DNA from: Anthoceros angustus
Taxonomy: Eukaryota > Plantae > Anthocerotophyta
Length of the DNA: 64,000 nucleotides
Assembly (NCBI GenBank): GCA_010909165.1
Contig: MU008160.1
Span: 1,240,001-1,304,000 of the forward strand
Direction: 5' to 3'
This document shows positions 26,271-64,000 of this stretch, one piece after another. A program made the translations under genes and the position numbers. How positions within the stretch are numbered: position 1 is the stretch's first letter; every line of letters begins with the position of its first letter. Under the pieces are notes generated by a model, which saw nothing but the letters and a program-made list of their open reading frames with translations, was not told the DNA's origin and ran no database searches.

Positions 26271-26389
26271 GGATGCCGGAGGAAGCGGTTGCGGGAGGAC
26301 TACGAGGATGCTGGAGGGAAGGGATGGCACATGCACGAGTAGGAAACAGATCCGGAGGTCGTGGTGGCGGGGCCGACAGTAAACCGGTT

Positions 26390-27997: not shown

Positions 27998-29113
27998 TTA
28001 CCGTAAATAAGAATACAATACAGCCAGCTCTCGTTGGAATGTGGGCGAAGCCTGGAGTTCAGCCAAATAGTATGTGAGGGGATGATTAAGCTGTTTTGTG
28101 TCATACAACCCCATCTTGATTACTTGGCGATCGTATGCTCGTCCAGCTGCCTCTGCCGTGTTCCAGCTGTTGCATCTCGACGTCCGACCAGATGCCACTC
28201 CCATGTTCTGAATTTGTCGAAACATACCTACTTGACCCTTATTGATATCGAATATGTAAGCCTCATACTTTGTTTGCCTGGAGTTTCGATCGGGCATATC
28301 TGCAGCTGTTCTGTATCGTCCTCGCATGTACACGCCGTGGGGCAGGCCTTTGCATAGATGGCGGGGAATGAAGTGACACCGTTCATGAACCTCCATCCTC
28401 ACGTAACCTATCACTTCGCGCCAGTCTGTGATGGCCACCCAGTGTGGACGTTGTAGGCGTTGCAGATATAGCTGTAAATCTTGAGGTTCTTTGAAATTCA
28501 GTTTCACTTTTCTATGGCCGGGATACCTGAAGCCACGTAGAAACAGCATGATCTGCACCATGTCGTGGAGTATAGCTGCCCCCATCGCACAATCACATTG
28601 TCCTAGATAAATCTGCCCCCTGCTGGAGCCTTTCGGCCAATTGCCAGGCAGAAAAATCTGCACTTGGTAGGTTTGGTTTCGAGCATTCCAGAACACTCCG
28701 TGATATTTGTCTCCTTTACCTGGATCCATGTTGTCCTCAGTTTGAGCATCCTCGGGATCGCCTGAACCACTGTGGATATCCCTACGCGCCTTTTTCCGAG
28801 GCCCTCCGTCCCGCGTTGCCACCACAGTCCTCAGCATCCTCTGTAAATCCTCCATGGTGGGCGGTTGTGGTGGTGGTATCTTTCGTTTCATTTCGTCAAT
28901 CAATTCCGCAATGTGTATCAGCTCCAATGTATGCCGAGTTGGGCTACAAGGGTTGTCTGATTGGATGAAGCTCCAGGGTAAGGAGGGAGTGGTGCCGGCT
29001 TCCACCTTGCTTGCTTCTTCGGGGTCGAGACAGAAATTATTCTGGACGAGCATTTTCAGGCCCTCATCCACCCACAGCCAGGGGACAGGGCTAGCAGGAG
29101 AAACTTCCTCCAT
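27998..29113 (-). CDS. Divergent double AP2-like domain protein, paralog 1 (371 aa)
   Basis: YHGVFW...YLGQCD...AAILHD...LNF and PHGVY...KYEAYIFD...WNTAEAAGRAYD...LNHPLTYYLAEL resemble two AP2 repeats. Single coding exon. Clear paralogs at 37440 and 62844. Confidence 0.75.
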   Translation of the reverse strand: MEEVSPASPVPWLWVDEGLKMLVQNNFCLDPEEASKVEAGTTPSLPWSFIQSDNPCSPTRHTLELIHIAELIDEMKRKIPPPQPPTMEDLQRMLRTVVATRDGGPRKKARRDIHSGSGDPEDAQTEDNMDPGKGDKYHGVFWNARNQTYQVQIFLPGNWPKGSSRGQIYLGQCDCAMGAAILHDMVQIMLFLRGFRYPGHRKVKLNFKEPQDLQLYLQRLQRPHWVAITDWREVIGYVRMEVHERCHFIPRHLCKGLPHGVYMRGRYRTAADMPDRNSRQTKYEAYIFDINKGQVGMFRQIQNMGVASGRTSRCNSWNTAEAAGRAYDRQVIKMGLYDTKQLNHPLTYYLAELQASPTFQRELAVLYSYLR

Positions 29114-29480
29114 AATTTACTGAGAGCAAATGCCGGTAGCACGAATTGCCCAAGCAGCGAGACAGGGAGGGTGGAACGCAGCAGTTCTGAGACAGTCCGT
29201 TTAAAGAAATAGCACGAAGTACAAAACTTTTGTGCTGTGGAATTCTGATGCTACCACTTTGAATTTGACTATCCTTCTCGCAAGCAGATGAGGCAAGTTG
29301 AAGCCACCACGCTGGGGAGGAGGATCACACACAGCCGGCGCTGAAAATGGGAAGCGGACAGCATTCCCTACGGCAGGCCAATCGTTGAATGAGATCTAGA
29401 ACTGGAAAGACATGCGGTGGGAATCTCAGGGCATGGAAGCGCAGATGCACAGGGTTTCAGGGATGTGGAATGCCATGAGT

Positions 29481-31354
29481 TCAGTCTACAATGTTGTTGA
29501 GCTCCCCAATGCCTTCAATTTGAATCCGGATTTCATCACCCGGCACCAGATGACGAGGAGGGTTGAAACCAGAACCAACACCAGCGGGTGTTCCTGTCGC
29601 GATGATGTCTCCGGGCTGTAGGGTGATACCTGCTGAGATGGTTTCAATCAGCTCTGGTATAGAAAAGATCATTTGTGAAGTCCGACCATCCTGCCACACC
29701 GCCGTAAAGTCAAGGTGGGAACATCATTGTAGCAAAGGAAACTGCCTCATCAGAACCTTGACTGGAGGTTCCGTCAAACCTGTCGCAACTCGTCGTTTAT
29801 CCAGCATTGGATTCGCAAGTCAAGGCCATTGACTGTAGATGCAGGTGCGATGGATGGGCCCATTGGACAGAATGTATCACAACTTTTCCCCAAGAACCAC
29901 TGGCAGTGAAGAAACATATCACATACTCAGTGTAAGAGCCATGTTCCTGTTGTAAATGACATGGGCGGAACGGTTAGAGTCACCTGCCTGTTGATGACGT
30001 TTCTGCAAGTCCCTCGCTGTTACATCATTCAGTATGGTGTACCTGGACGAAAGCAACGGAACGTGGTGATATCAGCAGTAGGCAACAGAGCTGAACCAGG
30101 GTATGCCAGGACAAGGTCCACCACTGACCCAAAGACGTGCGACATGGCTTCCTCTCTTGAAATATTGTGGCCACTTCTGCCTATGATCACTGCAAGCTCT
30201 GCAACATGGGAGAGCAACATAAGATCAAAGTCTGAAGTCAAAATTAAGGACGAATGAGGTAGACAGCGACAGGTGAGCTGTCTCTTCACAGTGTTACCTG
30301 CTTCATAGTCCACCTGTGAAGACACTCCATGAGGATACTTGATAGCAGCTCCAGGCCCCACAACTGACTGTGGTGCTTTTGTGAAGACGATCGGATGCTA
30401 CAAAGTGGGGCAGAAATGTGCAAGCTGTGAAGATCCCAGTTCCAGACTTGGAAGTTCAAACTTCTCCATAGGGGCGAGGCTAACCTTTGGCGCATCCGGA
30501 GTCGTTATACCTGGAGCAGATTTCCAGGTGTCCACTTCCTTCACGTGGTCCAGATAATTCTTCCCGATGCACATGATGACACCACGGGGCCTGGGAATTG
30601 GGGCCAGGACCTTCACTTCACTCAGCTTTTGTGAGCTCTTGTCCACCACATCCAATCTGCAACAAGACCGACGAACAGTGGGTTGTATAGTCAGGAATAC
30701 CATGCTAAGAGATGATTCATGGCAGCCACAACCTAATCAAGCCTGAACTCACCTGTCTTTTATATCACTCCAGTTCTGTATAACATCCATCATGTCATTG
30801 TACTCTGGAAAAACAGTGTCACCTGACGAGCTTAAAACCTCCTGCAAAGGCCTGTTGTCCCAGATCAGTCACTTCCCGGCATCAGCAATCAAATGCTCAG
30901 AAATTAGCGAAGCTACCGAGGAACTGCTCTCAAGTTACCAGAAGTCATCCCCACGCACAATCCCAACGGCGGTCCGCCCCTCCTTGGACTCGAATGTTAT
31001 AAGCTTGAAGCCACTGCCTAAAAGACAAGAGAGAGACAGTTGTGCTTGGTACTGAGCAGCTTGAGAGCAAAATCTGAGACAGCGTGAATCAAGTATTATG
31101 GAAGCAGCGCATTGCCCACCAGTGCCTCCTGAACCTTCAGCAAGGTCCTTCTCCAGAGGAGCAAACAGGGGTTTCCTAGCCGCCATGCTAGACAACCTGA
31201 ACCGCGCAACCTGCCTCGAATTGCCCGCTTGGAGCCAGCCTCCAGAAATGACAGAATGTCGCCTCCACGAAGCTACTGCATCCAACGACCCTGAACCGAC
31301 GAGTTCCGGGTAGTCCGTAACGGCTGGTAGTGGAAGGCACCGGACCCCAAGCAT
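29481..31354 (-). CDS. Fumarylacetoacetate hydrolase (FAHD2-like) family protein, multi-exon
   Basis: Exons read IMCIGKNYLDHVKE, VDYEAELAVIIG, LNDVTARDLQ, WFLGKSCDTFCPMGP and MIFSIPELIETISAGITLQPGDIIATGTPAGVG. Confidence 0.9.
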
Positions 31355-31890
31355 CACAATGTGACTGAGAGAGGCCAGATGTGCGACAGGAAGGTTCAAG
31401 TTCCCCAACCGGGACGGGGACACCATTGGTGCTCACAGACAGCATCCATGCATGTCCACATCCCGGGAATCCCCAATCCTAGAACAGATAACAATTAGCT
31501 TTAACTGTAAAGGCATTACCCGACCAGATTAGCCCTGACTGTGAAGCTTCCTTCTGCTGGAAGGTTTATGATAATATATAAATCATAAGTCTCCACATAC
31601 ATCAGAAAAAGCTCTAGATAATCTTGAATACGCTCGTCCGGATTCTTCAGACATTGCGTGCAGCTCACACAAGCCAGCTCTGCCACAGGGCACAAGCGTG
31701 GCTCTCGCTGCAGCCTCCTAACATCTCATATGGTCCTATGTACACAACTCTTCCAGTGGAGAAAAAAAGGAGGGGCCATCCTCCACACGCACTGAATCCT
31801 AAGCCAGTCCTAAGGAAATATTGAAGCAGCCGGATGGTCCAGCCGCCGAAGAATTCTCCTTTTTGTACAGTGCCAGACTCCATAAAGCAG

Positions 31891-36739: not shown

Positions 36740-37150
36740 TGTGCTATTGCTTCCGCTGTGTGCTTTGTCATAATATTCAATATATTCAGCAGACAGGGAT
36801 CAACAAATCTCCGTTTCTTATGACAGAAAATACCAGACCCACCAGGCCTGCATTCCCACTGCCCCACAAGATGTCCCTTGGAGATTTTCCAGCAGCACCA
36901 CACCAAAGCTGTAGACATCACTTCTGGCCGTCAGCTGAGAGGTACGGAAGTATTCAGGATCCATGTAGCCGATGGTGCTCTGTATTCCCATAGTTGACAC
37001 ATGAGTGGCCCCCATTGCAGCCAGCTCGGAGATGCCAAAATCCACCACCTTGGCGTTCAAGTCTTCATCAGGAAGGATTTTTGAAGACTTGAAAGGATTC
37101 TGTGTGACAGATGGGAGGGTCAGTTGCAGAATGCAGGTAGGCCAGAGCAT
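36740..37150 (-). pseudogene. Receptor-like kinase catalytic-domain fragment
   Basis: KSSKILPDEDLNAKVVDFGIS...STIGYMDPEYFRTSQLTARSDVYSFGVVLLE. N-lobe absent, HRD motif degraded, frameshift after subdomain IX. Confidence 0.8.
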
Positions 37151-37439
37151 TGGAGGTCTGAACGGGTATGAGGAGGCGCCGTTTCCATCTGTTTAAAGCC
37201 CAGGTGGTATTTCTCCCGAAAAATTGTTTTTGCTGAGATCCAAGAGTTGAAGACCAGGAGGAAGCGTCCGCCGAGAGAGACGACTACCCGACAGCCAAAA
37301 TTCAGCCAAGACGAGCAAGTTCATTCCCCGTCATCACATCGTGTTTACGAAGTTCATCAAACACGATCTGAGCATCTTGCAAGCTACCACACTTTTGCAT
37401 AAACTAATCACTGAAGATACACATTCGGATCTGATCCTC

Positions 37440-38651
37440 TCACGAGGCCTTCTTCATCTCACGAGGCCTCGACGTCCACGAATACAGAATGGCTAGCTCT
37501 CGCTGAAATTTTCGTGACGCCTGAAGCTCAGGCAAGTAGTCTGTCAACGGATGGTTCAGGTCCTTGGTGTCATACAGTCCCAACCTGATTACTTCCCGAT
37601 CGTAAGCTCTTCCAGCTTCCTCTGCTGTATCCCACTGGAACCTCCGGAGCCTCGGCACAGTCGTGGATGGCATTTCCATGTTCGGAATCAATTGGTATCT
37701 GCCAAATCTGCCCGAATCGACATCGAACACATGAGCCTCATACTTATCAGTGCGTGGGGACTGTGGATCTGGCACGGCAGCTTTGGTCTTGCGCCGTCCT
37801 CTGATGTACACACCGTGTGGCAGTTTTTCGCATACATGACGGGGTACGATGGTTTTTGCAGGTTGCACTTCCCTCCTCACGTAGTCGATAACTTCTCGCC
37901 AATCCGTGAAAGCCACCCATTCTGGCCGCTGCAGGCGCAGCAAATACTCCTGCAAGTAGTGAGGCTCCGTGAAATTCAGCTGGTGCTTCCGGACTCCTGC
38001 GGGCAACCTGAACCCACACAGATAGAGCTTGATCAGCACGAGGTCCCTGAAGATGGCTGCCAATAATGGGTCATCAAAACTCCCAAGATGCACCTCCCTC
38101 CCAGTCGTGCTAGGATCACGCGAATCCCAAGGCGCCTGGATCTTCACTTCGTGTTTGTTTTTCGCCTTGTGCCATCGCACTCCGTAATATGAATTCGCCG
38201 CAGCATCCTGGTCTTGGCCATCAGCCTCTTCCTGGCCATCAGTCCCTTCCTGGCCCGCGGAGCTGCAACCCAGCTCACCACTGGTTCGCGCTCTTTTTCT
38301 CCGCTGTTTGTTGTCCGGCTGCGTTCTCTTCGCCTCCAAATCCCTCACCGCCCTTTGCAAATCCCTCATTGTGGGCGGGGCTGGCGGATCTCTGCTTCTC
38401 TGGAGCTTCATGATTGCGTTCGCTACGTCCTCCAGCGTAAAGAAACATGGCGTCTGTGATCCACCGAGTTTGAAGAATTTCCAAGGTAACTGTGGAGTAG
38501 TACCGGTCTCTCTGCTGCCCTCCTGAGTGCTCGCACGTGAAGATTCGTCACGAATATAATGCTTTCGGACGAAGAACTCCATCCACTCATGCACCCAAAA
38601 TCTGGGAAAAACCCGAGCACTGCGAGCGACGCTCACTTGGTTGCCAGCCAT
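37440..38651 (-). CDS. Divergent double AP2-like domain protein, paralog 2 (403 aa)
   Basis: YYGVRWHK...HLGSFDDPLLAAIFRD...LNF and PHGVYIRG...KYEAHVFD...WDTAEEAGRAYD...LNHPLTDYLPEL. A splice acceptor (ctacag) lies just upstream of the ATG. Confidence 0.8.
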   Translation of the reverse strand: MAGNQVSVARSARVFPRFWVHEWMEFFVRKHYIRDESSRASTQEGSRETGTTPQLPWKFFKLGGSQTPCFFTLEDVANAIMKLQRSRDPPAPPTMRDLQRAVRDLEAKRTQPDNKQRRKRARTSGELGCSSAGQEGTDGQEEADGQDQDAAANSYYGVRWHKAKNKHEVKIQAPWDSRDPSTTGREVHLGSFDDPLLAAIFRDLVLIKLYLCGFRLPAGVRKHQLNFTEPHYLQEYLLRLQRPEWVAFTDWREVIDYVRREVQPAKTIVPRHVCEKLPHGVYIRGRRKTKAAVPDPQSPRTDKYEAHVFDVDSGRFGRYQLIPNMEMPSTTVPRLRRFQWDTAEEAGRAYDREVIRLGLYDTKDLNHPLTDYLPELQASRKFQRELAILYSWTSRPREMKKAS

Positions 38652-39299
38652 CGAGCGTTACACAACCTGTAGAAAACTGGCAAGAGTGGGAAGTGGCACA
38701 ACCCAAGCCTTGAGATATCCTGGACGAGGGGCCCAGAGGTGGGGGCTCACAGCGCTGCTGCTGGCGAGTGGCTTAAGGTTGCCAAGCCAGCTGCTGATCA
38801 AGTGTTCTTCCTACCATGCCTACGCCTAAGTTTCATGTAACAAAAGCAAGACAACGAATTCCGCGTTGAACGTTTAGCGAGACCTAATTCAAGCGGACTG
38901 AGCGATCGGTGAACGTTCCTCTGCAGCAATGATAGCAGACAGAATGAGAAGGGTGATGTGTAGAAGAGCGAAAGCGAAGACGACACGAGCAGGATTAATG
39001 GTAACAATTCAAGCATCTGCTACTCCAATAAGTAGGCAGTCAAAAGATGAAGAAGGCCAAGGGCTAAGTGGGTAGAAGGCCAAGGGCCAAGGGCGAAGTA
39101 GGTGGAAGGCCTAGTGTAGTCTTCGCAATCTCCAGGAGGACTTGCTGCCACTGCGTCTCTTGGGGGTCATTGCTGTTTCCGGCTTCCGGAGACCGGAAGC
39201 TTACTTTGGTTGTATGCTTGCTTTACACAGAGTCACTTTGAGCGATCTCGGTGCAAACTTGCATCGATTGGGGACGCTTTCCGAGGCCGTCGGAGCCCT

Positions 39300-51589: not shown

Positions 51590-53881
51590 GTGCTCTTCCG
51601 AGATATGGTTCTGGCAATCCAGTCACGCAAAGGACAGCAGGACCCGCTGGGAGAACAGGTTTTGTGGGCGAAACAAAGGGGTGGGTTGAGAGGTATTCAG
51701 GGAAGATCTCCCGCTCAGCTGACTTGTAGGAAGCGATCTTTGGCACACAATGCAGCCGCCAGGTGCAACATCTTTGCAAGAAAGCCAGCCAGTCCAAGAG
51801 AGTGTCTGGCATTTTCGAAGGAGAGTCTTGGACAGGAGCTCGTTTCCAAGCCACCTTGGGTGGATGGGCAGCTGGGTGCTCTGGGAATGCCGTTTGGCCG
51901 TCGTTCCCCTGCAACAAACTGGAGTCTGCTGGATGGTGCTGACTCTTGCAGGCCTGCAGGATACGAAAAGGGGATGACGGCTGAAACCGTGACCAAGCTG
52001 TGTCAGGAGGGGCAGGTCAAGGAGGCCGTTGAAGCTCTGGGAGTGATGGTGCAAGGCGACTATCATATTTCCAAATTCGTGTTTTACACGGTCCTTAAAG
52101 AATGTGTGGCTATGAGGGATCTGCCCCTGGGTCGTCGTGTTCATGCGGTTATGGTGAAGAAAGGGTATGAGTCGGACACGTTCTTGTGCAACCACATCCT
52201 GCGAATGTATTCTTCGCATGCCAGGTTGCAAGAAGCCATGGATGTGTTTGGCGTGGTTGCCAAACCAGATGTCTTCATGTGGTCTTCTATGATTTCTGCG
52301 TATGTGAAACTGGGGCAAGATAAGCAGGCCATAGACCTCTATCATAGGATGCGCAGGTCAGGTGTGAAGCCAGATGGCCATGTGCTTGTCGCAGCACTTC
52401 AGGCTTGTGCGAAGGGAGCGGATTTGAAATCTGGACAGCAAGTGCATGCTGATGTGCTGGTTGGTGGCGCTGAGCATGATGTGTTTGTATGTAGTTGCTT
52501 GGTGGACATGTATGCAAAGTGTGGCAGCTTGAAAGACGCTCAAAGGGTGTTTGACGGACTTGGTGAAAAAAATGCTGTGACCTGGAATGCCATGATAGCA
52601 GGGTATTCCCAGCAGGGCATGGGCGCAAAAGCCCTTCGCCTTTATAGTGCTATGGCAGAAGGAGGCATGGCTGCACCCACTTCTGTTACGTTTATTTGCC
52701 TTCTGCAGGCATGTGCAAGTATGGGCACGCCGGCATTGGAGAAGGGGAAGCACCTTCATGCACATATAAGACAGCAAGGACTTGAAGCTGATCTTGTTGT
52801 AGGTGGCAGCCTGGTAAACATGTATGCGAAGTGCGGAAGCTTAGAGGATGCTAGGGGCGTGTTCGACGGACTTGGTCATAAAAATGTGGTGGCGTGGAAT
52901 GCCATGATAGCAGGATACTCCCAGCAGGGCATGGGGCAGGAGGCTCTTGCTCTTTACAGGGCTATGCAAGAAGAAGAAGGCACTATTCCACCCAATTCTG
53001 TTACGTTTTTGTGCCTCCTTCAAGCATGTGGAAGTCTGGCAGCTCTGCATGTGGGAAGGCAGCTTCATGCACAGATCAAGGAGCAAGGTCTCCAAGGTGA
53101 CGTGCTTATAGCCGGCAGTTTGATAGACATGTATGGGAAGTGCGGTAGCATGTTTGAGGCACGGCATGTATTCGAGACATCAGTCGAAAGAGATGTTGTC
53201 GCATGGAGTGCATTGATTGCTGGATACACCCGTCAAGGAAACTGTGACGAGGTCTTCAATTTGATTTGCAGAATGCGACACAGTGGCATACAGCCAGACG
53301 GCATCACATTTCTCAGTGTACTGACAGTATGCAGTCATGCTGGCCTTGTGAACAAGGGGAGAGAGTACTTTGAATCTATGAGCAAACACTATGGCATCAC
53401 TCCTACGCTGGAGCACTACACATGCATGGTGGATCTTTTAGGTCGTGCAGGTCGACTGCATGAATCACTAGTCTTCATAAAGACAATGCCTCTGCAGCCT
53501 AATGCTGCAGTCTGGCACACTCTAATAGGTGCTTGTAGAAAGTGGAAAAACGTGGAGGTGGGATGCCATGCTTTCCATGAAGCAGTGAAGCTAAACAACG
53601 AAGATGCTGTAGCATACGTCTTGATGTCCAACGTGTACACCAGTGCCCAAATGTGGGATCAGGCAGATGAGTTGCAGTCAAGGAGACTAAGAATCAAAGC
53701 ATGGAAGAAGCCAGGTCAGAGCTGGTGGACAGACATGGGTGGACACGTTCATAGCTTTCTGGTTGGGTATAAGACGCACACTGGGCACGAAGAGAGCGAG
53801 TCTTTCCCAATAAGCGAAGAGGGATATGTGCCACATCTGGATTCCTGGTCAGGAGCACTATCTGAATCTGATGACGGGTGA
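51590..53881 (+). CDS. PLS-class PPR protein with truncated WW-type DYW domain (E+ like)
   Basis: PLS repeats, E domains, KKPGQSWWTDMGGHVHSFLVG...EGYVPHL, then a stop. No HxE or CxxC. Confidence 0.92.
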   Translation: MLFRDMVLAIQSRKGQQDPLGEQVLWAKQRGGLRGIQGRSPAQLTCRKRSLAHNAAARCNIFARKPASPRECLAFSKESLGQELVSKPPWVDGQLGALGMPFGRRSPATNWSLLDGADSCRPAGYEKGMTAETVTKLCQEGQVKEAVEALGVMVQGDYHISKFVFYTVLKECVAMRDLPLGRRVHAVMVKKGYESDTFLCNHILRMYSSHARLQEAMDVFGVVAKPDVFMWSSMISAYVKLGQDKQAIDLYHRMRRSGVKPDGHVLVAALQACAKGADLKSGQQVHADVLVGGAEHDVFVCSCLVDMYAKCGSLKDAQRVFDGLGEKNAVTWNAMIAGYSQQGMGAKALRLYSAMAEGGMAAPTSVTFICLLQACASMGTPALEKGKHLHAHIRQQGLEADLVVGGSLVNMYAKCGSLEDARGVFDGLGHKNVVAWNAMIAGYSQQGMGQEALALYRAMQEEEGTIPPNSVTFLCLLQACGSLAALHVGRQLHAQIKEQGLQGDVLIAGSLIDMYGKCGSMFEARHVFETSVERDVVAWSALIAGYTRQGNCDEVFNLICRMRHSGIQPDGITFLSVLTVCSHAGLVNKGREYFESMSKHYGITPTLEHYTCMVDLLGRAGRLHESLVFIKTMPLQPNAAVWHTLIGACRKWKNVEVGCHAFHEAVKLNNEDAVAYVLMSNVYTSAQMWDQADELQSRRLRIKAWKKPGQSWWTDMGGHVHSFLVGYKTHTGHEESESFPISEEGYVPHLDSWSGALSESDDG

Positions 53882-55581
53882 AGAACCATCTTGATCTTCC
53901 TGTTAAGAATGATCCGGGACTTTGGCATGGATCCCATATTCTCAGCTGGTTTCCAGGTACAGAGGAGTCTCCTTGTGAATCAAAGCTCTTTTGCAACAAA
54001 GGTGGTGCACGGCAGGAGAGGGATATGTGCCACATCCGGATTGCTGGTCAGGAGCACTACCTGAATCTGATAATGGGTGAAGAACCATCTTGATCTTCCC
54101 GTTAAGAATGATCGGGGACTTTGGAATGGATCCCATATTCTCAGGTGGTTTCCAGGTACAAAGGAATCTCCTTGTGAATCAAAGGTCTTTTGCGACAAAG
54201 GTGGTGCACGGCAGGAGAGGGATATGTGCCACATCCGGATTGCTGGTCAGGAGCACTACCTGAATCTGATGATGGGTGGAAAACCATCTTGATCTTCCCG
54301 TTAAGAATGATCGGGGACTTTGGAATGGATCCCATATTCTCAGGTGGTTTCCAGGTACAAAGGAATCTCCTTGTGAATCAAAGGTCTTTTGCGACAAAGG
54401 TGGTGCACGGCAGGAGAGGGATATGTGCCACATCCGGATTGCTGGTCAGGAGCAATAACTGAATCTGATGACGGGTGGAAAACCATCTTGATCTTCCCGT
54501 TAAGAATGATCAGGGACTTTGGAATGGATCCCATATTCTCAGGTGGTTTCCAGGTACAAAGGAATCTCCTTGTGAATCAAAGGTCTTTTGCGACAAAGGT
54601 GGTGCACGGCAGGAGAGGGATATGTGCCACATCCGGATTGCTGGTCAGGAGCAATAACTGAATCTGATGACGGGTGAAGAACCATCTTGATCTTCCTGTT
54701 AAGAATGATCCGGGACTTTGGCATGGATCCCATATTCTCAGCTGGTTTCCAGGTACAAACCTTGTGAATCAAAGCTCTTTTGCGACAAAGGTGGTGCACG
54801 GCAGCAGAGGATATGTGCCACATCTGGATTGCTGGTCAGAGCACTACTTGAATCTGATGATGGGTGAAGAACCATCTTGATCTTCCTGTTAAGAATGATC
54901 CGGGACTTTGGCATGGATCCCATATTCTCAGCTGGTTTCCAGGTACAAAGGAGTCTCCTTGTGAATCACACGCTCTTTTGCGACAAAGGTTGTGCACGGC
55001 AGGAGGGATATGTGCCACATCCGGATTGCTGGTCAGGAGCGCTACCTGAATCTGATGATGGGTGAAGAACGATTTTGATCTTCCTGTTAAGAATGATCCG
55101 GGACTTTGGCATGGATCCATATTCTCAGCTGGTTTCCAGGTACAAACCTTGTGAATCAAAGCTCTTTTGCGACAAAGGTGGTGCACGGCAGCAGAGGGAT
55201 ATGTGCCACATCTGGATTGCTGGTCAGGAGCACTACTTGAATCTGATGATGGGTGGAAAACCATCTTGATCTTCCTGTTAAGAATGATCCGGGACTTTGG
55301 CATGGATCCATATTCTCAGCTGGTTTCCAGGTACAAAGTCTCCTTGTGAATCACGCTCTTTTGCGACAAAGGTTGTACGGCAGGAGAGGGATATGTGCCA
55401 CATCCGGATTGCTGGTCAGGAGCGCTACCTGAATCTGATGATGGGTGAAGAACGATTTTGATCTTCCTGTTAAGAATGATCGGGGACTTTGACAATAATC
55501 CCATATTCTCAGCTGGTTTCCAGGTTCAAAGGAGTCTCCTTGTGAATCAAACGCTCTTTTGCGAAAAGGTTGTGCACGGCA
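53819..55581. repeat. ~199-bp tandem array, 9 copies, starting inside the PPR 3' end
   Basis: gag(g)gatatgtgccacatc occurs at 53819, 54018, 54217, 54416, 54615, ~54807, 55003, 55194 and 55386. Confidence 0.97.
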
Positions 55582-56053
55582 GAAAGCATCCGCAAGCCTG
55601 GGCAGCCTGGCCCTGGAGATGGGAAAATGAGCAAATTAGAGAACAAGGAATCCGCACGCGGTTATAGCCAGCACAATCAACTCTATTGGACATTAAATCT
55701 GGGAATACGGGGTGTTGGCTTCACACGGATGCCTTCCTAGATGTGCTTGCAAGGATACCACTAAGTGGCCCGATGTAGCATCCTTGCTACAGTTTTTGAA
55801 AAGAGCAAAATCAAACTGCTTGCTACAATAAAAACAAAATGGGCCTCGTGTCGAAACGTCATGCTTTTCAAGTTCATTCCACAAAGAGCTAGCTTTGTGT
55901 GATCTCTCTTGCCTCCAGCTCCTCTCGGACGTATCTGGCCTGGCCGGTGGCACCAGGGTCTGCATCCAGAGGCTTGTTCTTGCAAGCCATGGCTGGTAGC
56001 TTAATTGGGCTTCTGGGAAGATCTTCCCCTCGCCTGACTTCAAGCAAGAACTC

Positions 56054-59000
56054 GTGGTCGCACTGCCAAGTCGGGAAAGGCACCTCATTTGCAAGGCAAC
56101 CAGCCCGTCTGGGAGGATGCCTAGCTGGAGTAGGATTCTCTACAGAGTGTCGTCGCCAGCTCAACTTGTGGCGACAAATTTTTTGGGACCCCGGGGTAAG
56201 AGGCAAGATAAGAGGAGCCTCCAGTCTCCTCACTTCCGGCAAAAGCAGTCCCAGGAGGTCCTCTGGTTGAACAACTTCTGTAAGCCAGCTGTATTGGATG
56301 CACAGCTTGCTGTGATGGATGTAGGAATGAGTGGTCACTCGAGCAGGAGCTTACCGGATGATCGTTGCCCTCGCAGGTCTGTAGGTGATGGTAGGGATGT
56401 AACGGCTGAAACCGTGAGGAGACTGTGTCTGGAAGGCCATCTCGCTGTGTCGGTTGATGCTTTGGAAATTCTGGTGCAGACAGACTGTTCTATTTCAAAA
56501 TCGCTATTTTATACCGTCCTGAAGAAGTGTGTGGTCAACAAGAATCTTGTCCTTGGCAGTCGGGTCCATGCCTGCATGGTAAAGAAGGGGTACCAGTCAG
56601 ATACGTTCCTGTGCAACCACATTCTCCGAATGTATGCTTCTCATGGCAGGTTGCATGAGGCGATGGACGTGTTTGAAGGGGTTGTTAAACCAGATGCCTT
56701 CATGTGGTCGTCCATAATCTCTGCACATGTTAAACAGGGACAAGACAAGCAGGCTATACAACTCTATCATCGTATGCGGAGGTCCAGTGTGAAGCCAGAT
56801 AGTTATGTATTCGTGGCAGCCCTACAGGCTTGTGCAAGGGGCGGAGACCTGAAAGCTGGCCAGCAAGTCCATGCTGATGTGGTGGCCAGTGGTGATGTGA
56901 TGGCCGGTGGCACAGAGCCCGATTTGTTTGTTTCTAGTTGCCTGGTGGACATGTATGCAAAGTGTGGTAGATTGGAAGATGCCCAGCGTGTGTTTGATGG
57001 ACTTGGTAGAAAAGATGTTGTGACGTGGAATGCCATGATATCAGGATATTCTCAGAATGGCTTTGGGCAGGTAGCCCTTCGTCTCTACAGGGCTATGCAA
57101 AAGGACGGTATGGTTGTGCCCGATTCCGTGACATTTGTGTGTCTCCTGCAGGCATGTGCAGGTGTTGGCCCCCTTGCGTTGGAGAACGGGAAGGACCTTC
57201 ATGCACAAATTAGGGAACGGGGACATGAAGCTGATGTGTTGATAGCCAACAGTTTGGTAAATATGTATGCAAAGTGTGGGAGCTTAGAAGATGCGCAGAG
57301 AGTTTTTGATGGCCTTTCTCACAAAGATGTGGTAACGTGGACTGCCATGATAGCAGGATATTCCCAGCAGGGCATGGGGCATGAAGCCCTTCGTGTTTAC
57401 AGTGCCATGGAAGAAGAAGGCATGGCTGTTCCCAATTCCGTGACATTTGTGTGCCTGCTGCAAGCATGTACGAGTGTGGGTGCCCTGGCATTGGAGAAGG
57501 GTAAGCATGTGCATGCGCAAATTAGAAAACAAGGGTTCCAGGCTGATCTGTTTGTCGCCAACAGTTTGGTAAACATGTATGCAAAGTGTGGCAGCTTGGA
57601 GGATGCTTGGAGAGTGTTTGAAGCACTTGGTCACAAAGATGTGATCACGTGGAATGCCATGATAGCAGGATATTCACAGCAGGGCATGGGTCAGGAAGCC
57701 CTTAGTCTTTACAGTGGAATGCAAGCGGAGGGCATGGCTGTACCTGATTCAGTGACATTAGTTTGCCTCTTGCAGGCATGTGCAGCTGTGGGCACCCCGG
57801 CTCTGGAGCAGGGCAAGCAGCTCCATATGCAGATAAGTGAACAAGGTCACCAAGCTGATGTGTTTGTAGCTAGCAGTTTGTTGAACATGTATGCAAAGTG
57901 TGGCAGCTTGCAAGATGCAGAGAGAGTGTTTGAAGGACTTGGTCACAAAGATGTGGTGATATGGAATGCCATGATAGGAGCATATTCCCAGCAGGGGATG
58001 GGCCAGGAAGCCTTTCGCCTCTACAGCGCTATGCAAGATGAAGGCATTGCTGGACCTGATTCAATGACATTTGTGTACCTCTTGCAAGCATGTGCAAGTG
58101 TGGGTGCACTGGCTCTGGAGACGGGGAAGCAGCTTCATAGGCAGATTACAGAGCAAGAACTTGAAGCTGATGTGTTTGTAGCTAGCAGTGTGGTAAACAT
58201 GTATGCCAAGTGTGGCAGCCTGGAAGATGCGCAGAGAGTGTTTGAAGTTCTTGGCAACAAAGACGTGGTGACATGGAATGCCATGATAGCAGGATATTCC
58301 CATCAGGGCATGGGCCAAGAAGCCCTCCATCTCTACAGCGCTATGCAACAAGAAGGCATGGCTGTACCTGACCCTGTGACATTTGTGTGCCTCTTGCAGG
58401 CATGTGCAGGTGTAGGCACCCCGGCGTTGGAGATAGGGAAACAGCTTCATACACAGATCAGAGAACAAAGACACCAAGATGATGTGGTTGTGGCCAGCAG
58501 TTTGGTGAACATGTATGCAAAATGTGGCAGCTTGCAAGATGCACGGAAAGTGTTTGACAGCCTTGGTCAAAAAAATGAGGTGACCTGGACTGCCATGATA
58601 GCAGCATATTCCCAGCAGGGCATGGGCCAGGAAGCCCTTCATCTCTACAGGGCTATGCAAGATGAAGGCATGGCTGTACCTGACCCTGTGACATTTGTGT
58701 GCCTCTTGCAGGCATGTGCAGGTGTAGGCACCCCGGCGTTGGAGATAGGGAAACAGCTTCATACACAGATCAGAGAACAAAGACACCAAGATGATGTGGT
58801 TGTGGCCAGCAGTTTGGTGAACATGTATGCAAAATGTGGCAGCTTGCAAGATGCACGGAAAGTGTTTGACAGCCTTGGTCAAAAAAATGAGGTGACCTGG
58901 ACTGCCATGATAGCAGCATATTCCCAGCAGGGCATGGGCCAGGAAGCCCTTCATCTCTACAGGGCTATGCAAGATGAAGGCATGACCGTACCGGATTCCG

Positions 59001-59776
59001 TGACATTTGTGTGCATCCTGCAGGCATGTGCTAACGTGGCAGCTTTGCATCTGGGAAGGCAGCTACATGCCCACATTGTAGAACAAGGGCTTCAAACTGA
59101 TGAGTTTGTAGCCAGCAGTTTGATTAACATGTATGGGAAGTCGGGAAGCATGCTTGATGCACAGCGGGTGTTCGATGCGTTGCCCAAGAGAGACGTGGTC
59201 ACTTGGAACGCACTGATTGCAGGCTACACCTGTCAAGGAGACAGTGAAGGGGTCTTCAGCGCGTTCCGGAAGATGAGGGGAGATGGCATACTCCCAGATG
59301 GCATCACACTCCTGTGTGTACTAACGGTGTGCAGTCATGTGGGTCTAGGGAACAAAGGGTGGGAGCACTTTGAGGCTATGAGCAGATGCTATGGCATCAC
59401 CCCCACGGAGGACCACTACACATGCATGGTGGATGTCTTAGGTCGTGCAGGACAACTGGATGCGGCATTAGCCTTTGTGAGAACAATGCCTCTACAGCCT
59501 AAGGCTGCCGTCTGGCACACTTTGTTGGGTGCGTGTCGAAAGTGGAGGAACGTGGAGGTGGGACGCTATGCTTTTGAGGAAGCAGTGAAGCTAAACAAGA
59601 AAGATGCTGCAGCATATGTGTTGATGTCAAACATATACACCAGTGCCCAGATGTGGGAGCAAGCACAGAAGATGCAGGCAAAGAGAAAGAGAACGAGGGC
59701 ATGGAAGCAGCCAGGTCAAAGCTGGTGGACAGACAGAGAGGGACTGGTGCATGCTTTTTCGGTGGGGAATGAGTAA
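56054..59776 (+). CDS. Long PLS-class PPR protein with truncated WW-type DYW domain
   Basis: 1240-aa ORF with about seven to eight PLS triplets and E domains, ending KQPGQSWWTDREGLVHAFSVGNE*. The N-terminal TAETV...LC block is shared with the 51590 gene. Confidence 0.93.
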   Translation: MVALPSRERHLICKATSPSGRMPSWSRILYRVSSPAQLVATNFLGPRGKRQDKRSLQSPHFRQKQSQEVLWLNNFCKPAVLDAQLAVMDVGMSGHSSRSLPDDRCPRRSVGDGRDVTAETVRRLCLEGHLAVSVDALEILVQTDCSISKSLFYTVLKKCVVNKNLVLGSRVHACMVKKGYQSDTFLCNHILRMYASHGRLHEAMDVFEGVVKPDAFMWSSIISAHVKQGQDKQAIQLYHRMRRSSVKPDSYVFVAALQACARGGDLKAGQQVHADVVASGDVMAGGTEPDLFVSSCLVDMYAKCGRLEDAQRVFDGLGRKDVVTWNAMISGYSQNGFGQVALRLYRAMQKDGMVVPDSVTFVCLLQACAGVGPLALENGKDLHAQIRERGHEADVLIANSLVNMYAKCGSLEDAQRVFDGLSHKDVVTWTAMIAGYSQQGMGHEALRVYSAMEEEGMAVPNSVTFVCLLQACTSVGALALEKGKHVHAQIRKQGFQADLFVANSLVNMYAKCGSLEDAWRVFEALGHKDVITWNAMIAGYSQQGMGQEALSLYSGMQAEGMAVPDSVTLVCLLQACAAVGTPALEQGKQLHMQISEQGHQADVFVASSLLNMYAKCGSLQDAERVFEGLGHKDVVIWNAMIGAYSQQGMGQEAFRLYSAMQDEGIAGPDSMTFVYLLQACASVGALALETGKQLHRQITEQELEADVFVASSVVNMYAKCGSLEDAQRVFEVLGNKDVVTWNAMIAGYSHQGMGQEALHLYSAMQQEGMAVPDPVTFVCLLQACAGVGTPALEIGKQLHTQIREQRHQDDVVVASSLVNMYAKCGSLQDARKVFDSLGQKNEVTWTAMIAAYSQQGMGQEALHLYRAMQDEGMAVPDPVTFVCLLQACAGVGTPALEIGKQLHTQIREQRHQDDVVVASSLVNMYAKCGSLQDARKVFDSLGQKNEVTWTAMIAAYSQQGMGQEALHLYRAMQDEGMTVPDSVTFVCILQACANVAALHLGRQLHAHIVEQGLQTDEFVASSLINMYGKSGSMLDAQRVFDALPKRDVVTWNALIAGYTCQGDSEGVFSAFRKMRGDGILPDGITLLCVLTVCSHVGLGNKGWEHFEAMSRCYGITPTEDHYTCMVDVLGRAGQLDAALAFVRTMPLQPKAAVWHTLLGACRKWRNVEVGRYAFEEAVKLNKKDAAAYVLMSNIYTSAQMWEQAQKMQAKRKRTRAWKQPGQSWWTDREGLVHAFSVGNE
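58352..58983 (+). repeat. Identical in-frame 312-bp (one PLS triplet, 104 aa) duplication inside the PPR ORF
   Basis: gaaggcatggctgtacctgaccctgtgac occurs at 58352 and 58664. The translated 104-aa blocks are identical. Confidence 0.92.
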
Positions 59777-59990
59777 GCATCCCCAGGGTCAGGCAGGGCC
59801 GAAGAAGTTATCATCCAAAATGAAGAAAGGAGGACCCATCACCTGCAGATCTTCTGTGCAGGCCTAGCGAGAAGCTATCACACGCTCTAAATAGCACACC
59901 TGCATGGACCACTGTTATCATCGTGAAAGATTTGCGGCTCTGGCACCTGGGAATCTATTTATTATGAGCAGGGGTCGAAGTTGGAAAGTC
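59777..59990 (+). pseudogene. Decayed DYW deaminase sequence behind the stop codon
   Basis: A shifted frame reads PSEKLSHALNSTPAWTTVIIVKDLRLW, recognisable as HSEKLA...TP...IVKNLRxC with the Zn-ligand His and Cys lost. Confidence 0.7.
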
Positions 59991-62843
59991 CCCATGCAAG
60001 ATGGCTGCTCATGGATTTCTCTGTATGCGATACCTCATATCCCCAGGCACATTTACATGCCATGGAAAAATATCTGTATGTGTGTCACTTATTCTCAGGT
60101 GGACAAGTTCCCGTGCAACCAGATCCTGCGATGGCAGGTTTCCTCTAGATTGATGTTTTTACTCTGGTTGCCAAGGCCCGATCCCTTCCTGTGGTATTCC
60201 TTGATCTCTGAATATGTTGACCACAGGCAGGCTAAGTTAGGCATACGGGTGTATGATGACAAGCAGAGGGCAATTGTGGATCCAGAAGGACATGTACCTG
60301 TGGCAGCACTCAGACTGTAGATGGATGGCAATACAGCAATTGATGAATTCAAGATTGTTGCACACCGGTGTAGAAACGAAGGGTTTCTCGGCCCATGTCC
60401 TGGGCCTGCTGGGCATAAGTAGCCTCCCTCATATCATTGCATTCACGTGACCGATTGGGATTAGCAATCTTGCCATGGGGCAGTCTAGGACTCCAGGTCA
60501 CCCGTCGAACTTCCCCAAGCAGCCACTGAGAGCTCCCGCCCTTTGCATCCATATTTGTATACATAGATGTCCATCAAGCACCTGCTAACAAATCGGGCTC
60601 AGCAAAACTTTGTCCTTCGCGTCATCGTAGTAGTCTTAAAGCACCATTTGTACCCTGGGCCTCCTGGATCATGGCTGCCGCAAACTCTGTTGCATGCAAA
60701 CTTCTGGACGACAGCGTAATTGATCAATGTTACTTACTCTTCATCAAGAAGCTGGATATCAAAGCTGCACTGGATAGCAATTAAACAAAACTTGGCGTTG
60801 GCGTGCTGGCATTCTTGAATGCCCTCTAGACAGCACAAAACTTGGCACGAAACGGTGTGCAACTGTTTTCTAACTCCGTTCGCAGCCCTTCTGTGGCTCT
60901 CGACCTCCGGCCTCCCCCTGGCTTATTCTAAGCGATACAATATACATATTCCACCGAAGCAGCTCTCTCCCCGCACAGGTCACAGGTCGCCCGTGGAGAA
61001 GTGCTAAACTGCAGTATCCTGGGACGTGAACCAAATTCTTGAGTACATGGGACAAAAAACTTCCACTTCCATGGTGGAATTCGTGCTAGACTGGGCTGGG
61101 TGATTTCAAATTTTACAGTAGATCGATCGATCAAGAACATTAAGCAACGGTCAGACTAGGAAACTCAAGATTGATCAGTTGTCCCAGCAGTTGACGTGAT
61201 CACACTTGTACTTTAAGTACCAACTACTTATGATATCTGCTTCTTCTACAGGTATACATTAGCAAGGTCTACAGGTAATGTACCCCTCTTGCGAGCATCA
61301 GCGTTGCTAAACGGTAACTCTACAACCCAACTGCAGCTCCTCACCAGTAATGCAGTCCACCAACTAAGGCTTGCCTGGCAGTGCATTTTCATCTTGAAAA
61401 CGCAATGCAGGGATCAAAACATGGCTGCATTCAAAGAGCAGTGTACCTGCAGCGCTGTCGTCTGGAAGGAGTTTAGTCCATCTGCAAGGCACTTGGATAT
61501 GTATGCCGGCTTTCACCACTCACTCAAATGCTAGCGCTGTCCATGGGCGTATACCCTCCTGGGATGTATGTACATGTCACCACATCAAGTCTACACGATT
61601 CACGACTGTGCTGTGCAAGGTCGATCGAGCTAACCATTTCGATCCAAGTTTCCACCGAAGTCGCTTAAAGAGGAGAGCTCGAGTCCGCAGGTTTGCTATA
61701 TATGCTCTGCCCCAGCCCGCTCTACTGCTTTCTTGCTTGCGCAAAGAAAAAACTCTGCCTTGCCCCAAAAGCTTGCCCGGAATATCGTGGTCCACATATA
61801 GGGAGGTGTGGTACCTAGGGTACGGTCCGGCCCAAGCCTCCCCCGGCTGGGTGGGTTAAAGTTCCCGTCGCTGCCCTGGAGGTGTGGTATCTAGGATACG
61901 GTCCGGCCCGAGCCTCTAGCCTTCCTCGGTGGGTTGAAGTTCCCGCCACCCCAAGCACGTCATTTAAAACACTGTGAGGCTTGCAATCGATGCAAGTTTG
62001 CAGAGAGGTCAGTGAAAGCGGATAGCGCGATCGCAAGTTTGCTATGCTCTCTGCCCTCTGCTACTCCTTTCTTGCTTTTCTTGGATGCGCGGAGATTAAT
62101 CGGGTTGGTGTCTGTCCCCCGCGCGCTTTCTGATGAACAGCACATAAGCAGTCTGATCAGCAGCGTCTGATGCTCGTGTGGTGTTTTGTTCAGGTCTGAT
62201 GTGTTTCGCAGGACGTCGCAACCTTACATGGAGCGCCAGCTCGCAGGCCCTAGGCTAGGCCGGTCGTAGTCTCCGATCGCGACCGTCCATCGGCTCTGGA
62301 TTCAGCTGGCCGCAACAGACGCACAAGCTGCAGGTTAGTTCAATTCCTCCTTGCACGCCTGGGAGCGCAAGTAGTATCAGGTTTACGCCGGGAGTGTTCT
62401 GGATTCATTCTCTTCATGCTCTTCATTCTTCTAGTTTTGGAACTTGAGAGTCGGCGGGAAGGAGGAGGAGCCCTTGATCAGCAGAGCTCTGTGTCTCCTC
62501 CGAGATCGACTTGCAGGACGTGCTGTGCGAACGCCTGGATTCAGCTGGCAGCAACAAAAGCACAAGCTGCAGGCTAGGTTAGGTCAAATTCTTCCACGCC
62601 TGTCGTCGCTAGCGGTGATCTTGGATTCGTTGTCTTGCATCGAACTTAGGCGTAGGAATGATGGGAAAAACCCTTGATCAGCAGCTGTGCATGCGCAGGA
62701 CTTGGCAACCTTGTAGAAGCCACGGGCCAGCAGCAGCGCTGTGAGCCCGTAGCCCTTGGCCCCTCTTCCAGGATCTCGAGCCTTGGATCGTGTAACTTCC
62801 CACTGTTGCCAGTATTATTCTACTGCAGGTTTTCTAAAGTTCG

Positions 62844-64000
62844 ATGCCTAAAGGCAAAGCGAAGGGCAAAGCCTATCACAATGCTGAGGATGTTCATGAA
62901 GTCCCCTGGCTATGGGTAGACGAGTGGATGGAGCTGCTCATCCGGAACGACTATTATCTTCAAGTACCTCGAGATGCAGGGACACCGGAGGGCAGCACGG
63001 ACACCAGTAGTACTCCACCGTTACCTTGGCTGTTCTTCAAAGCCGATCAACATTGCTCAACTCCCTATTTGTTGTCAGTGGAGGAAATCGCGGAGACGAT
63101 CACGAGGATCAAGGGAAGGAGACCTCCGCCAGCCCCGCCCACCATGGAGGACTTGCAAATGACGGTGAGAGCTTTGGAGGCGAGCTCGACGTGGACCAAG
63201 CCGGTGAAGAAGCCGCGGAGAAAAAGAGCTCGAACTAGTGGTGAGGGCTGCAGCTTCGCGGGCCAGGAAGGGGCTGCTGATGTCCAGGCAGGGGCTGCTC
63301 ATGTCCAGGAAGGGGCTGCTCATGTCCAGGTAGGGGCTGCTGATGTCCAGGCAGGGGCTGCTCATGTCCAGGAAGGGGCTGCTGATGTCCAGGCAAGGGC
63401 TGCTCATGTCCAGGCAGGGGCTGCTGATGTCCAGGCAGGGGCTGCTCATGTCCAGGCAGGGGCTGCTCATGTCCAGGAAGGGGCTGATGTCCAGGAAGGG
63501 GCTGGTGACCAGGACTCGATTGCTAAGGAAACTTATTACGGAGTGCAATGGCATATTGGGAACCAGAGACACGAAGTGCAGATCCAGACGCCTTTGGACT
63601 CGCGTAATCCTAGAACGGGTTACAGGCAGACGTATGTGGGGAGTTTTGATACTCCAATAATGGCAGCCGTGTTCAGGGACCTAGTGCAGATCAAGCTCTA
63701 CCTATCTGGGCTCAGGATGCAAAAACGAGTTCGAGTGAAGGTGAATTTTACAGAGCGTCACATGTTACAGGAGTATTTGGAGCGCCTGCAACGGCCAGAA
63801 TGGGTGGCTCTTACGGATTGGCGAGAAGTTCTCCAATACGTCAAGAGGGAAGCGCAACCTGGACGCAGCATCGTACCCCGTCATTTATGCGGAGACCTGC
63901 CACACGGTGTGTACATCAGAGGAAGGTGCCAAACCATTGCTGACATACCTGATCGACAGTCCCGAGGCACTAAGTATGAGGCTCATGTGTTCGATACCAA
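62844..64000 (+). CDS. Divergent double AP2-like domain protein, paralog 3 (runs off window end; absent from ORF track)
   Basis: Manual translation: MPKGKAKGKAYHNAEDVHEVPWLWVDEWMELL...PPLPWLFF...PPPAPPTMEDLQ...YYGVQWH...YVGSFDTPIMAAVFRD...LQRPEWVALTDWREV...LPHGVYIRG...KYEAHVFD, open to 64000. Confidence 0.85.
   Translation, partial: MPKGKAKGKAYHNAEDVHEVPWLWVDEWMELLIRNDYYLQVPRDAGTPEGSTDTSSTPPLPWLFFKADQHCSTPYLLSVEEIAETITRIKGRRPPPAPPTMEDLQMTVRALEASSTWTKPVKKPRRKRARTSGEGCSFAGQEGAADVQAGAAHVQEGAAHVQVGAADVQAGAAHVQEGAADVQARAAHVQAGAADVQAGAAHVQAGAAHVQEGADVQEGAGDQDSIAKETYYGVQWHIGNQRHEVQIQTPLDSRNPRTGYRQTYVGSFDTPIMAAVFRDLVQIKLYLSGLRMQKRVRVKVNFTERHMLQEYLERLQRPEWVALTDWREVLQYVKREAQPGRSIVPRHLCGDLPHGVYIRGRCQTIADIPDRQSRGTKYEAHVFDT
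63270..63497 (+). repeat. Coding minisatellite: 10 x 21 bp plus one 18-bp unit (GAA[D/H]VQ[A/E/V])
   Basis: ggggctgct(g/c)atgtccagg(c/a/t)a units, in frame in paralog 3. Confidence 0.95.

Follow-up and report, generated by a model that had tools for sequence, protein, structure and literature searches.

The locus described here raises the question of what kind of genes three related, uninterrupted open reading frames (ORFs) represent, and by which route they were multiplied. The frames lie in a stretch of 64,000 nucleotides of Anthoceros angustus (Anthocerotophyta), contig MU008160.1 of assembly GCA_010909165.1, positions 1,240,001 to 1,304,000 of the forward strand. This whole stretch is called the window, and all the coordinates refer to it. 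The window is nuclear land-plant DNA with about 50% GC. The three genes are named c1, c2 and c3 (copies 1 to 3), and their proteins contain two repeats, A and B, which are compared below with the AP2 domain. The analysis led to the likely answer that c1-c3 are functional, single-exon genes for nuclear-type proteins, belonging to a small divergent AP2 branch which was locally amplified by duplication at the DNA level and is evolving fast.

The three genes and their conservation

The ORF list, a three-way alignment and tblastn were used to trace the genes. The first-pass annotation of this DNA had proposed three paralogues sharing one layout, and all of the ORFs and listed blocks were found at their places. 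The common layout consists of an N-terminal block ending in PPxPPTMxDLQ, a basic motif (RKKARR or RRKRAR), repeat A, a spacer and repeat B, the last being complete in c1 and c2. Repeat A follows the pattern Y[HY]GV ... [LV]G ... AA...D ... [LV]NF in c1-c3, and repeat B the pattern PHGVY ... KYEA ... AGRAYD ... LNHPLTxYLxEL. The features of the three genes are as follows.

27998-29113, minus strand: c1, complete single-exon coding sequence (CDS) of 371 amino acids, most divergent of the three (ORF, alignment, tblastn)
28841-29113, minus strand: c1 N-terminal block, amino acids 1-91, ending in PPQPPTMEDLQ (alignment; no family, structure or atlas match)
28781-28798, minus strand: c1 basic motif RKKARR, after the N-terminal block
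28493-28705, minus strand: c1 repeat A, predicted diverged AP2 fold, amino acids 137-207 (AlphaFold2 topology; hhalign probability 97.4%)
28343-28492, minus strand: c1 spacer of 50 amino acids with LQRPHWVAITDWREV (alignment)
28055-28342, minus strand: c1 repeat B, predicted diverged AP2 fold with two insertions, amino acids 258-353 (PDB profile search; hhalign 95.1%)
28001-28054, minus strand: c1 C-terminal tail QASPTFQRELAVLYS
37440-38651, minus strand: c2, complete single-exon CDS of 403 amino acids (ORF, alignment, tblastn)
38355-38651, minus strand: c2 N-terminal block, amino acids 1-99, ending in PPAPPTMRDLQ (alignment)
38286-38303, minus strand: c2 basic motif RRKRAR
37971-38189, minus strand: c2 repeat A, predicted AP2 fold, amino acids 155-227 (AlphaFold2 block with confidence 72-93; match to AtERF1, 1gcc; weak PHROG HNH-endonuclease matches)
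37821-37970, minus strand: c2 spacer, amino acids 228-277, with LQRPEWVAFTDWREV, modelled as two helices
37524-37820, minus strand: c2 repeat B, putatively AP2-derived, amino acids 278-376, with one insertion following strand 1 and another separating strands 2 and 3 (PDB profile, hhalign, MAFFT, WRI1 match over both repeats)
37443-37523, minus strand: c2 C-terminal tail
62844-64000, plus strand: c3, CDS cut by the window end in repeat B, 385 codons without a stop
62844-63158, plus strand: c3 N-terminal block
63216-63233, plus strand: c3 basic motif RRKRAR
63263-63504, plus strand: c3 linker tandem repeat, in-frame units of 21 bp, 11.7 copies, AADVQAG-like, which lengthens the linker from the basic motif to repeat A
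63534-63749, plus strand: c3 repeat A
63750-63899, plus strand: c3 spacer
63900-63998, plus strand: c3 repeat B, first part

The amino-acid identity of c1 with c2 and c3 is 46-49% (49% and 47% in the three-way alignment), and c2 and c3 are 54-63% identical by tblastn. The spacer sequence LQRPxWVAxTDWREV and the block PPxPPTMxDLQ are almost invariant across the three proteins. A tblastn search over the window revealed no fourth copy and no further fragment. The N-terminal block, the basic motif and the spacer gave no match in Pfam, the PDB sequences or 1.84 billion cluster representatives, nor did the N-terminal block in the ESM atlas, in accordance with the earlier description of the N-terminal block and the spacer as unknown. 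By its pattern, the basic motif looks like a monopartite nuclear localisation signal.

The reading frames are far longer than expected by chance, as the longest ATG-initiated ORF in mononucleotide shuffles of the window was 152-192 amino acids, compared to 371 to more than 385 codons for c1-c3. An in-frame TAA is placed 9 nt upstream of the ATG in c2 and c3, and the C-termini of c1, c2 and the outside relative P0007 (described below) end in an identical type of tail; the coding regions therefore each form one complete exon, as had been annotated from the uninterrupted frames. An intron may still be present in the 5' untranslated region (5' UTR).

The maintenance of the frames was then considered. 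The frames are intact in all three copies and every indel in the alignment is in frame. A neutral simulation kept the ORF in 0.25-0.55% of copies at 10-15% change and in none at 25-30%; since neutral drift almost never preserves such frames, selection maintains the ORFs of c1-c3. The GC content at third codon positions is 0.52-0.60, as in the neighbouring PPR genes. The ratio of non-synonymous to synonymous substitution rates (dN/dS) is about 0.32 for c1-c2, with dS saturated. For the younger pair, c2-c3 (dS 0.37), it is 0.82 overall and 1.06 in repeat A, and the value of 0.82 bears out the earlier remark that the family is fast-evolving. The best conserved regions are the spacer and the first part of repeat B (amino acids 277-310), with 59-76% identity, and the sheet of repeat A stands at 31-52%. 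For this sheet a c2-c3 dN/dS of 1.54 was obtained from 29.5 non-synonymous and 5.5 synonymous changes; positive selection is not claimed, as the counts of changes are too few for significance.

In the public data searched, P0007 alone was a relative over the full length; it was also the only match of a word-index protein search with a four-sequence profile; the same search with c2 alone gave nothing. P0007 is a protein of 423 amino acids encoded by a single ORF (L001:10001-11272) on a 26.7-kb Logan contig of run SRR33208241, and shares 29% identity with c2 (tblastn E 4e-10). It shares with c1-c3 a helix followed by PPPPTLADLE, the helix of repeat A, a spacer with MTDWHEY, repeat B, the ELRASPGF tail and the single ORF. 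It differs from c1-c3 in the canonical YRGV of its repeat B, in the absence of the W-rich extreme N terminus and in the position of its basic motif, which precedes the proline block. The contig also holds a 902-amino-acid P-type PPR gene and intron-split eukaryotic genes; its host is therefore plant-like, and probably a different species from that of c1-c3. No near-identical copies of c1-c3 were found in the protein collections searched. The family is thus rare and restricted, yet older than one species. The earlier term lineage-specific holds as regards its near-absence from public protein sets, but not in the strict sense, as P0007 belongs to another genome, which is plant-like and contains PPR genes. 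Because P0007 is also a single ORF, the intronless state looks ancestral.

Relationship of the two repeats to the AP2 domain

The homology of the repeats was visible to sensitive methods only. A HMMER profile built from the three family sequences was searched against the 1.84 billion cluster representatives and gave eight matches at E<1e-3, of which five carry PF00847 at the matched place, with library-wide E-values of 2.6e-6 to 2.9e-4, and one is the full-length protein P0007. Repeat A is matched by P0001, a protein with eight AP2 domains from a eukaryotic metagenome contig (E 2.6e-6), and by P0005, an HNH_3 plus AP2 protein from a compact phage-like contig (E 1e-4). The multi-AP2 proteins P0002, P0003 and P0006 match the second half of repeat B (E 6e-6 to 3e-4). 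Two of the eight, P0004 and P0008, align mainly to the N-terminal part of the profile, which is rich in proline and lysine, and we take these matches to be compositional; P0008 also has weak AP2-like stretches. It was also observed that P0006 and P0003 are adjacent ORFs (L002:180-1590) on one 2.2-kb Logan contig (SRR12193055), and a stop codon or frameshift seems to have divided what was a single multi-AP2 protein.

An NCBIfam scan of the family proteins was blank, and the whole-family profile had no meaningful match among the PDB sequences. The profile of repeat B gave four distinct matches among 177,635 PDB sequences, namely WRI1, AtERF1 (two sequences) and ERF096, with E-values of 0.02-0.4, and the AtERF1 match aligns the RGV segment in register. 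Both repeats were further compared by hhalign with 14 bona fide AP2 domains. Repeat A reached a probability of 97.4% (score 58.5, 60 columns) and repeat B 95.1% (score 44.2, 63 columns), a support which is not independent, as the 14 reference domains were cut from the family-profile matches. In the controls, 40 column shuffles per profile scored at best 18.4 with a probability of at most 7%, and reversed profiles at most 19.8. A feature search of the ESM atlas with c2 brought up AP2 clusters at only 0.87 and was taken as a lead only.

The fold was predicted with AlphaFold2 (AF2). The first model, made with the three family sequences only, had a mean predicted local distance difference test (pLDDT) score of 40 and is usable for the topology of repeat A alone, which was strand-strand-strand-helix with a block pLDDT up to 77. 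When this model was searched with Foldseek against 350,542 chains, the top three were WRI1, WRI1 and AtERF1, at non-significant E-values. For the second model, a MAFFT alignment was used in which neighbouring AP2 domains of P0001, P0002 and P0006 were matched pairwise to repeats A and B. Here repeat A showed the same topology at pLDDT 72-93 and the spacer formed two helices. The first nine Foldseek matches of this model were all AP2/ERF structures, WRI1 being the best (E 5.4e-5, 223 columns over both repeats). Alignment by VIA-align gave Z 8.5 for WRI1, 7.0 for TEM1, 6.2 for AtERF1 and 4.2 for ERF96, the top five all being AP2/ERF; AtERF1 (1gcc) superposes on repeat A with a root-mean-square deviation of 2.7 Å over all 63 residues (Z 6.2). 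After the AP2/ERF structures the values drop to Z 3 with integrase arm-binding domains, the textbook example of distant kin of this fold. The models thus predict the AP2 three-strand-plus-helix fold for repeat A, and for repeat B they are confident in the helix half only. Profile search, hhalign, and AF2 with Foldseek agree for both repeats, supporting the view, already put forward in the first-pass annotation, that both are AP2-fold homologues; the structural check proposed there likewise returned AP2/ERF structures (WRI1, TEM1, AtERF1) on top.

The two repeats resemble different types of AP2 domain. The signature of repeat A is GV.WH ... V.IQ.P ... [HY][LV]G.[FC]D ... AA...D, and its best per-domain scores were obtained with the HNH-linked AP2 domain of P0005 (35 bits) and the domains of P0001 (25 bits). 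Weak PHROG matches of repeat A to HNH-endonuclease families fall in the part of the profile after the nuclease. Repeat B reads HGVY.RGR, an insertion, KYEA[HY][IV]FD, a second insertion and W.TAE.AGRAYD ... LNHPLT.YL.EL; its best per-domain scores, 27-30 bits, were with the LNFPL.DYL type of P0003 and P0006, compared to 17 bits for AtERF1 and 11 bits for WRI1. Repeat A thus resembles the AP2 domains of HNH endonucleases and protists, and repeat B, apart from its two insertions, is similar in its motifs to the first repeat of ANT/WRI. Both repeats had been likened earlier to the first ANT-type repeat, which stands for repeat B (KYEAHVFD, AGRAYD, LNHPLTxYLxEL) but not for repeat A with its HNH/protist GVxW pattern. 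Repeat A retains Y[HY]GV, [HY][LV]G and AA...D, and RAYD is absent. A comparison of repeat A with repeat B by hhalign was not significant (E 0.38), for which reason a recent internal duplication was dropped as the origin of the pair.

Several observations weigh against reading c1-c3 as functional, DNA-binding AP2 proteins. The Pfam profile PF00847, whose gathering threshold is 33.3 bits, gave nothing at E<=1 on the whole proteins and nothing at E<=10 on the isolated repeats, so the HMMER check suggested for it returned no match, and the profile of repeat A had no match among the PDB sequences. The alignment of the second AF2 model includes true AP2 proteins, which makes this model not fully independent; in it the helix half of repeat B reached a pLDDT of 60-70 and the strands stayed below 50. 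Repeat B retains HGV and AGRAYD, but LG is absent and the WLG turn is lost. The DNA contacts of AtERF1 are said, after work of Allen et al. in 1998, to be R147, R150, R152, W154, E160, R162, R170 and W172. In the alignments, repeats A and B both carry other residues at most of these Arg, Trp and Glu positions, several of which also vary among the paralogues, and the DNA binding of both may be altered or lost. Because most of the contact residues are replaced and repeat B has lost WLG, DNA binding is a property we only infer. Nuclear localisation, a transcriptional role and expression of c1-c3 are likewise inferred. Finally, the c2-c3 dN/dS near 1 could in part reflect relaxed constraint.

Duplication, surroundings and rival explanations

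The mode of duplication was studied from the flanks. A blastn alignment of 38222-38859 with 63297-62625 revealed that the similarity of c2 and c3 extends about 210 bp upstream of the CDS, which adds two features.

38652-38859, minus strand: c2 upstream segment, kept in the c3 upstream DNA (blastn and alignment)
62625-62843, plus strand: c3 upstream segment, matching that of c2 (blastn and alignment)

From its sequence, this common segment is likely a shared 5' UTR or promoter. The DNA similarity of c1 and c2 stops at the CDS. In this window no terminal inverted repeats (TIRs), long terminal repeats (LTRs), flanking direct repeats or target-site duplications (TSDs) and no poly(A) were found at c1 or c2, the flank check for TSDs and TIRs thereby giving a negative result, and no transposase, reverse transcriptase or integrase was found in or beside the ORFs of c1-c3. 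Because about 210 bp of upstream DNA are common to c2 and c3, a segmental DNA-level duplication carrying the promoter or 5' UTR fits better than retroposition. The earlier suggestion of a retroposed or mobile family was not borne out by these flanks, nor by the single ORF of P0007.

Next to c1-c3 there are a DUF1517 gene and pieces of genes for FAA hydrolase, kinase and PPR proteins. Directly downstream of c2 (36818-37401, minus strand) lies a PPR-like fragment of about 80 bp, which has 79-81% identity with the PPR gene at 56-58 kb, and adjoining it is an ORF with an LRR/kinase-domain fragment (Pkinase E 1e-10); c2 therefore sits within a mosaic of gene pieces. Upstream of c2, a PPR-derived stretch at 39426-40054, with tandem units of about 91 bp and stop codons, seems to be the decayed remnant of an array of PPR repeats. 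On the downstream side of c1, at a distance of about 1.4 kb (26386-26655), there are 63-bp tandem units with TTTAGGG telomere-type motifs. Some 130 nt downstream of the c1 stop (27820-27880, minus strand) a tRNA-looking stretch, GTTCAGTGGTATAATGCC ... GGGCGAGTTCAATTCTTGC, received no ARAGORN or Rfam call and may be a short interspersed nuclear element or a tRNA relic. Between c1 and the DUF1517 gene, a short ORF (30029-30361, minus strand) with a fumarylacetoacetate-hydrolase domain fragment (E 3.6e-6) is probably an exon of a spliced gene, or a fragment.

The window also holds three long PLS-type PPR genes, all with E motifs and one (886 amino acids) with a DYW deaminase domain, as well as a PGAP2IP-like ORF and a legumain (peptidase C13) fragment; tRNA (ARAGORN) and Rfam scans of the window gave no calls. 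The PPR ORF at 56054-59776 (plus strand, 1240 amino acids, PLS-type) has a strong internal periodicity of about 312 bp and contains two identical blocks of about 104 amino acids, which points to a recent internal duplication of PLS triplets. Tandem units of about 199 bp with 91-93% identity (53818-55582) directly follow the PPR gene at 51590-53881, and a direct tandem duplication of about 900 bp with 95% identity occupies 7080-8869 (7080-7999 versus 7970-8869).

As regards origin, two other explanations were weighed. The genes might belong to, or have been domesticated from, a mobile element or virus, as an accessory DNA-binding protein spreading with a repeat; its ancestor would then be an HNH-AP2 homing endonuclease or an AP2 gene of a virus or protist, and not the plant AP2/ERF stock. 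Their multiple copies in both orientations within 36 kb, the gene fragments in the neighbourhood, the best score of repeat A with the HNH_3 plus AP2 protein of the phage-like contig (the 35 bits per domain given above) and the weak PHROG HNH-endonuclease matches would suit such an origin. We nevertheless regard it as unlikely, as neither TIR, LTR, TSD nor poly(A) marks c1 or c2, no HNH, transposase, reverse transcriptase or integrase lies in or beside the ORFs, and the base composition is that of the host genes. At the protein level the copies are moreover 40-55% different, which would not be expected of a young repeat family, and their DNA similarity ends at the CDS (c1-c2) or about 210 bp upstream (c2-c3). 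Ordinary members of the plant AP2 subfamily (euAP2/ANT/WRI) which were retroposed and then diverged would equally have two AP2 repeats, a repeat B with motifs like KYEAHVFD and LNHPLTxYLxEL of the first ANT/WRI repeat, and WRI1 as the best structural match. This descent is hardly credible in view of the missing Pfam match, the 50-residue spacer which matches nothing, the different type of repeat A and its dissimilarity to repeat B, and the absence of retrocopy hallmarks; among the five AP2-bearing matches with E<1e-3 from the 1.84e9 representatives, none is traceable to a known plant AP2/ANT/WRI gene.

As regards function, the AP2 folds may no longer bind DNA, the proteins acting instead through protein-protein contacts of the N-terminal block and spacer, for example as decoys or adaptors. 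The substituted contact positions, varying among paralogues, and the stronger conservation of the spacer and residues 277-310 (59-76%) than of the repeat A sheet (31-52%) are what this role would predict; but the variation of the sheet is equally expected from changing DNA specificity, the NLS-like basic motif is retained in all the copies, and PF00847 is present in those HNH-linked and protist AP2 domains that show the same GVxW pattern. Such domains are generally taken as DNA-binding. A loss of DNA binding is thus considered rather improbable. It is very unlikely that c1-c3 are silent, functionless duplicates on the way to becoming pseudogenes. The c2-c3 dN/dS of 0.82 and the failure to find the ORFs as proteins in the public collections searched would agree with decay, but three intact frames with only in-frame indels, a simulation in which neutral copies keep the ORF in at most 0.55% of cases at 10-15% change and never at 25-30%, a long-term dN/dS of about 0.3 and a 29%-identical relative of the same layout, intact in another genome, speak for maintained genes.

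The reading of c1-c3 as functional, divergent and locally amplified AP2 genes would imply the following mode of action. The N-terminal block, probably helical and ending in PPxPPT[ML]xDL[QE], would recruit partners. The basic motif, next to a variable acidic or repetitive linker, would direct nuclear import, after which the beta-sheets of folds A and B would enter the DNA major groove as in WRI1. The conserved helical spacer of 50 residues would set the distance between the two folds, and sheet substitutions at the ERF-type contact positions would give each paralogue a different target.

The AP2/ERF proteins are among the largest plant transcription-factor superfamilies, and censuses made with PF00847-type profiles would miss the c1-c3 family. 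It unites a novel N-terminal module, a novel inter-repeat spacer and two putative AP2 folds of different types, and fast evolution in a local cluster, unusual among AP2 proteins, makes its members candidates for DNA binders whose targets change rapidly. Since repeat A is similar to the AP2 domains linked to HNH, the family is also relevant to the old question of how plants acquired their AP2 domains. By analogy with the KRAB zinc-finger genes of animals, one could speculate, with little expectation of being right, that c1-c3 represent a separate land-plant AP2 lineage which did not branch off from the canonical AP2/ERF stock, with repeat A from the HNH-endonuclease or protist type, whose clusters diversify in an arms race, each paralogue shifting the targets of its DNA-contact sheets against transposons, viruses or selfish repeats. 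If true, this would make the lineage a surviving intermediate stage of the mobile-element origin that has been proposed for plant AP2 domains. The short intronless genes make tests of binding and localisation straightforward.

Comparison with known AP2 systems

The double-AP2 proteins WRI1, ANT and euAP2 (structure 7wq5) are similar to c1-c3 in having tandem AP2-fold domains with a structured linker, and WRI1/ANT share with repeat B the KYEAH.[FW]D and A.RAYD motifs and the [LI]N.PL..Y..EL tail. The linker between the repeats of the AP2 subfamily is conserved and about 25-30 amino acids long. Unlike WRI1/ANT, the c1-c3 proteins miss PF00847, have an unrelated spacer of 50 amino acids and a repeat A of another type, and their repeat B has two long insertions and no WLG; the N-terminal block differs too, and a single-exon CDS, fast evolution and local amplification set the genes apart. 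The c1-c3 proteins would act in the manner of a double-AP2 factor such as WRI1/ANT, but by Pfam score, linker and type of repeat A they would fall outside the AP2 subfamily.

The HNH-AP2 homing endonucleases of bacteria and phages, reportedly described by Magnani et al. in 2004, resemble repeat A in the strand pattern GV.WH ... V.IQ.P ... HLG.FD, the AP2 domain of P0005 being the nearest. No HNH family was matched in any of c1-c3 by Pfam, and the PHROG matches are confined to the AP2 part of the profiles. In contrast to these endonucleases, c1-c3 are nuclear and eukaryotic with a host-like composition, and they possess a second predicted AP2 fold and the N-terminal block.

A non-canonical multi-AP2 family of the TcA3Bz1 type occurs in Taxus, Ginkgo, Physcomitrium and Marchantia, and its proteins carry B3, zf-C3Hc3H or Agenet domains (PMC6781369). 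The protist and TcA3Bz1-type multi-AP2 proteins are like c1-c3 in their non-canonical AP2 architecture, with tandem AP2 domains each followed by LNFPL.DYL. The AP2 domains of the protist multi-AP2 proteins pass the Pfam threshold, unlike the repeats of c1-c3; the N-terminal block and the TDWREV spacer are found in none of the protist or TcA3Bz1-type proteins, and B3, zf-C3Hc3H and Agenet are absent from c1-c3. On this comparison we place the family inside the AP2 superfamily, of which it would be a new and highly divergent variant.

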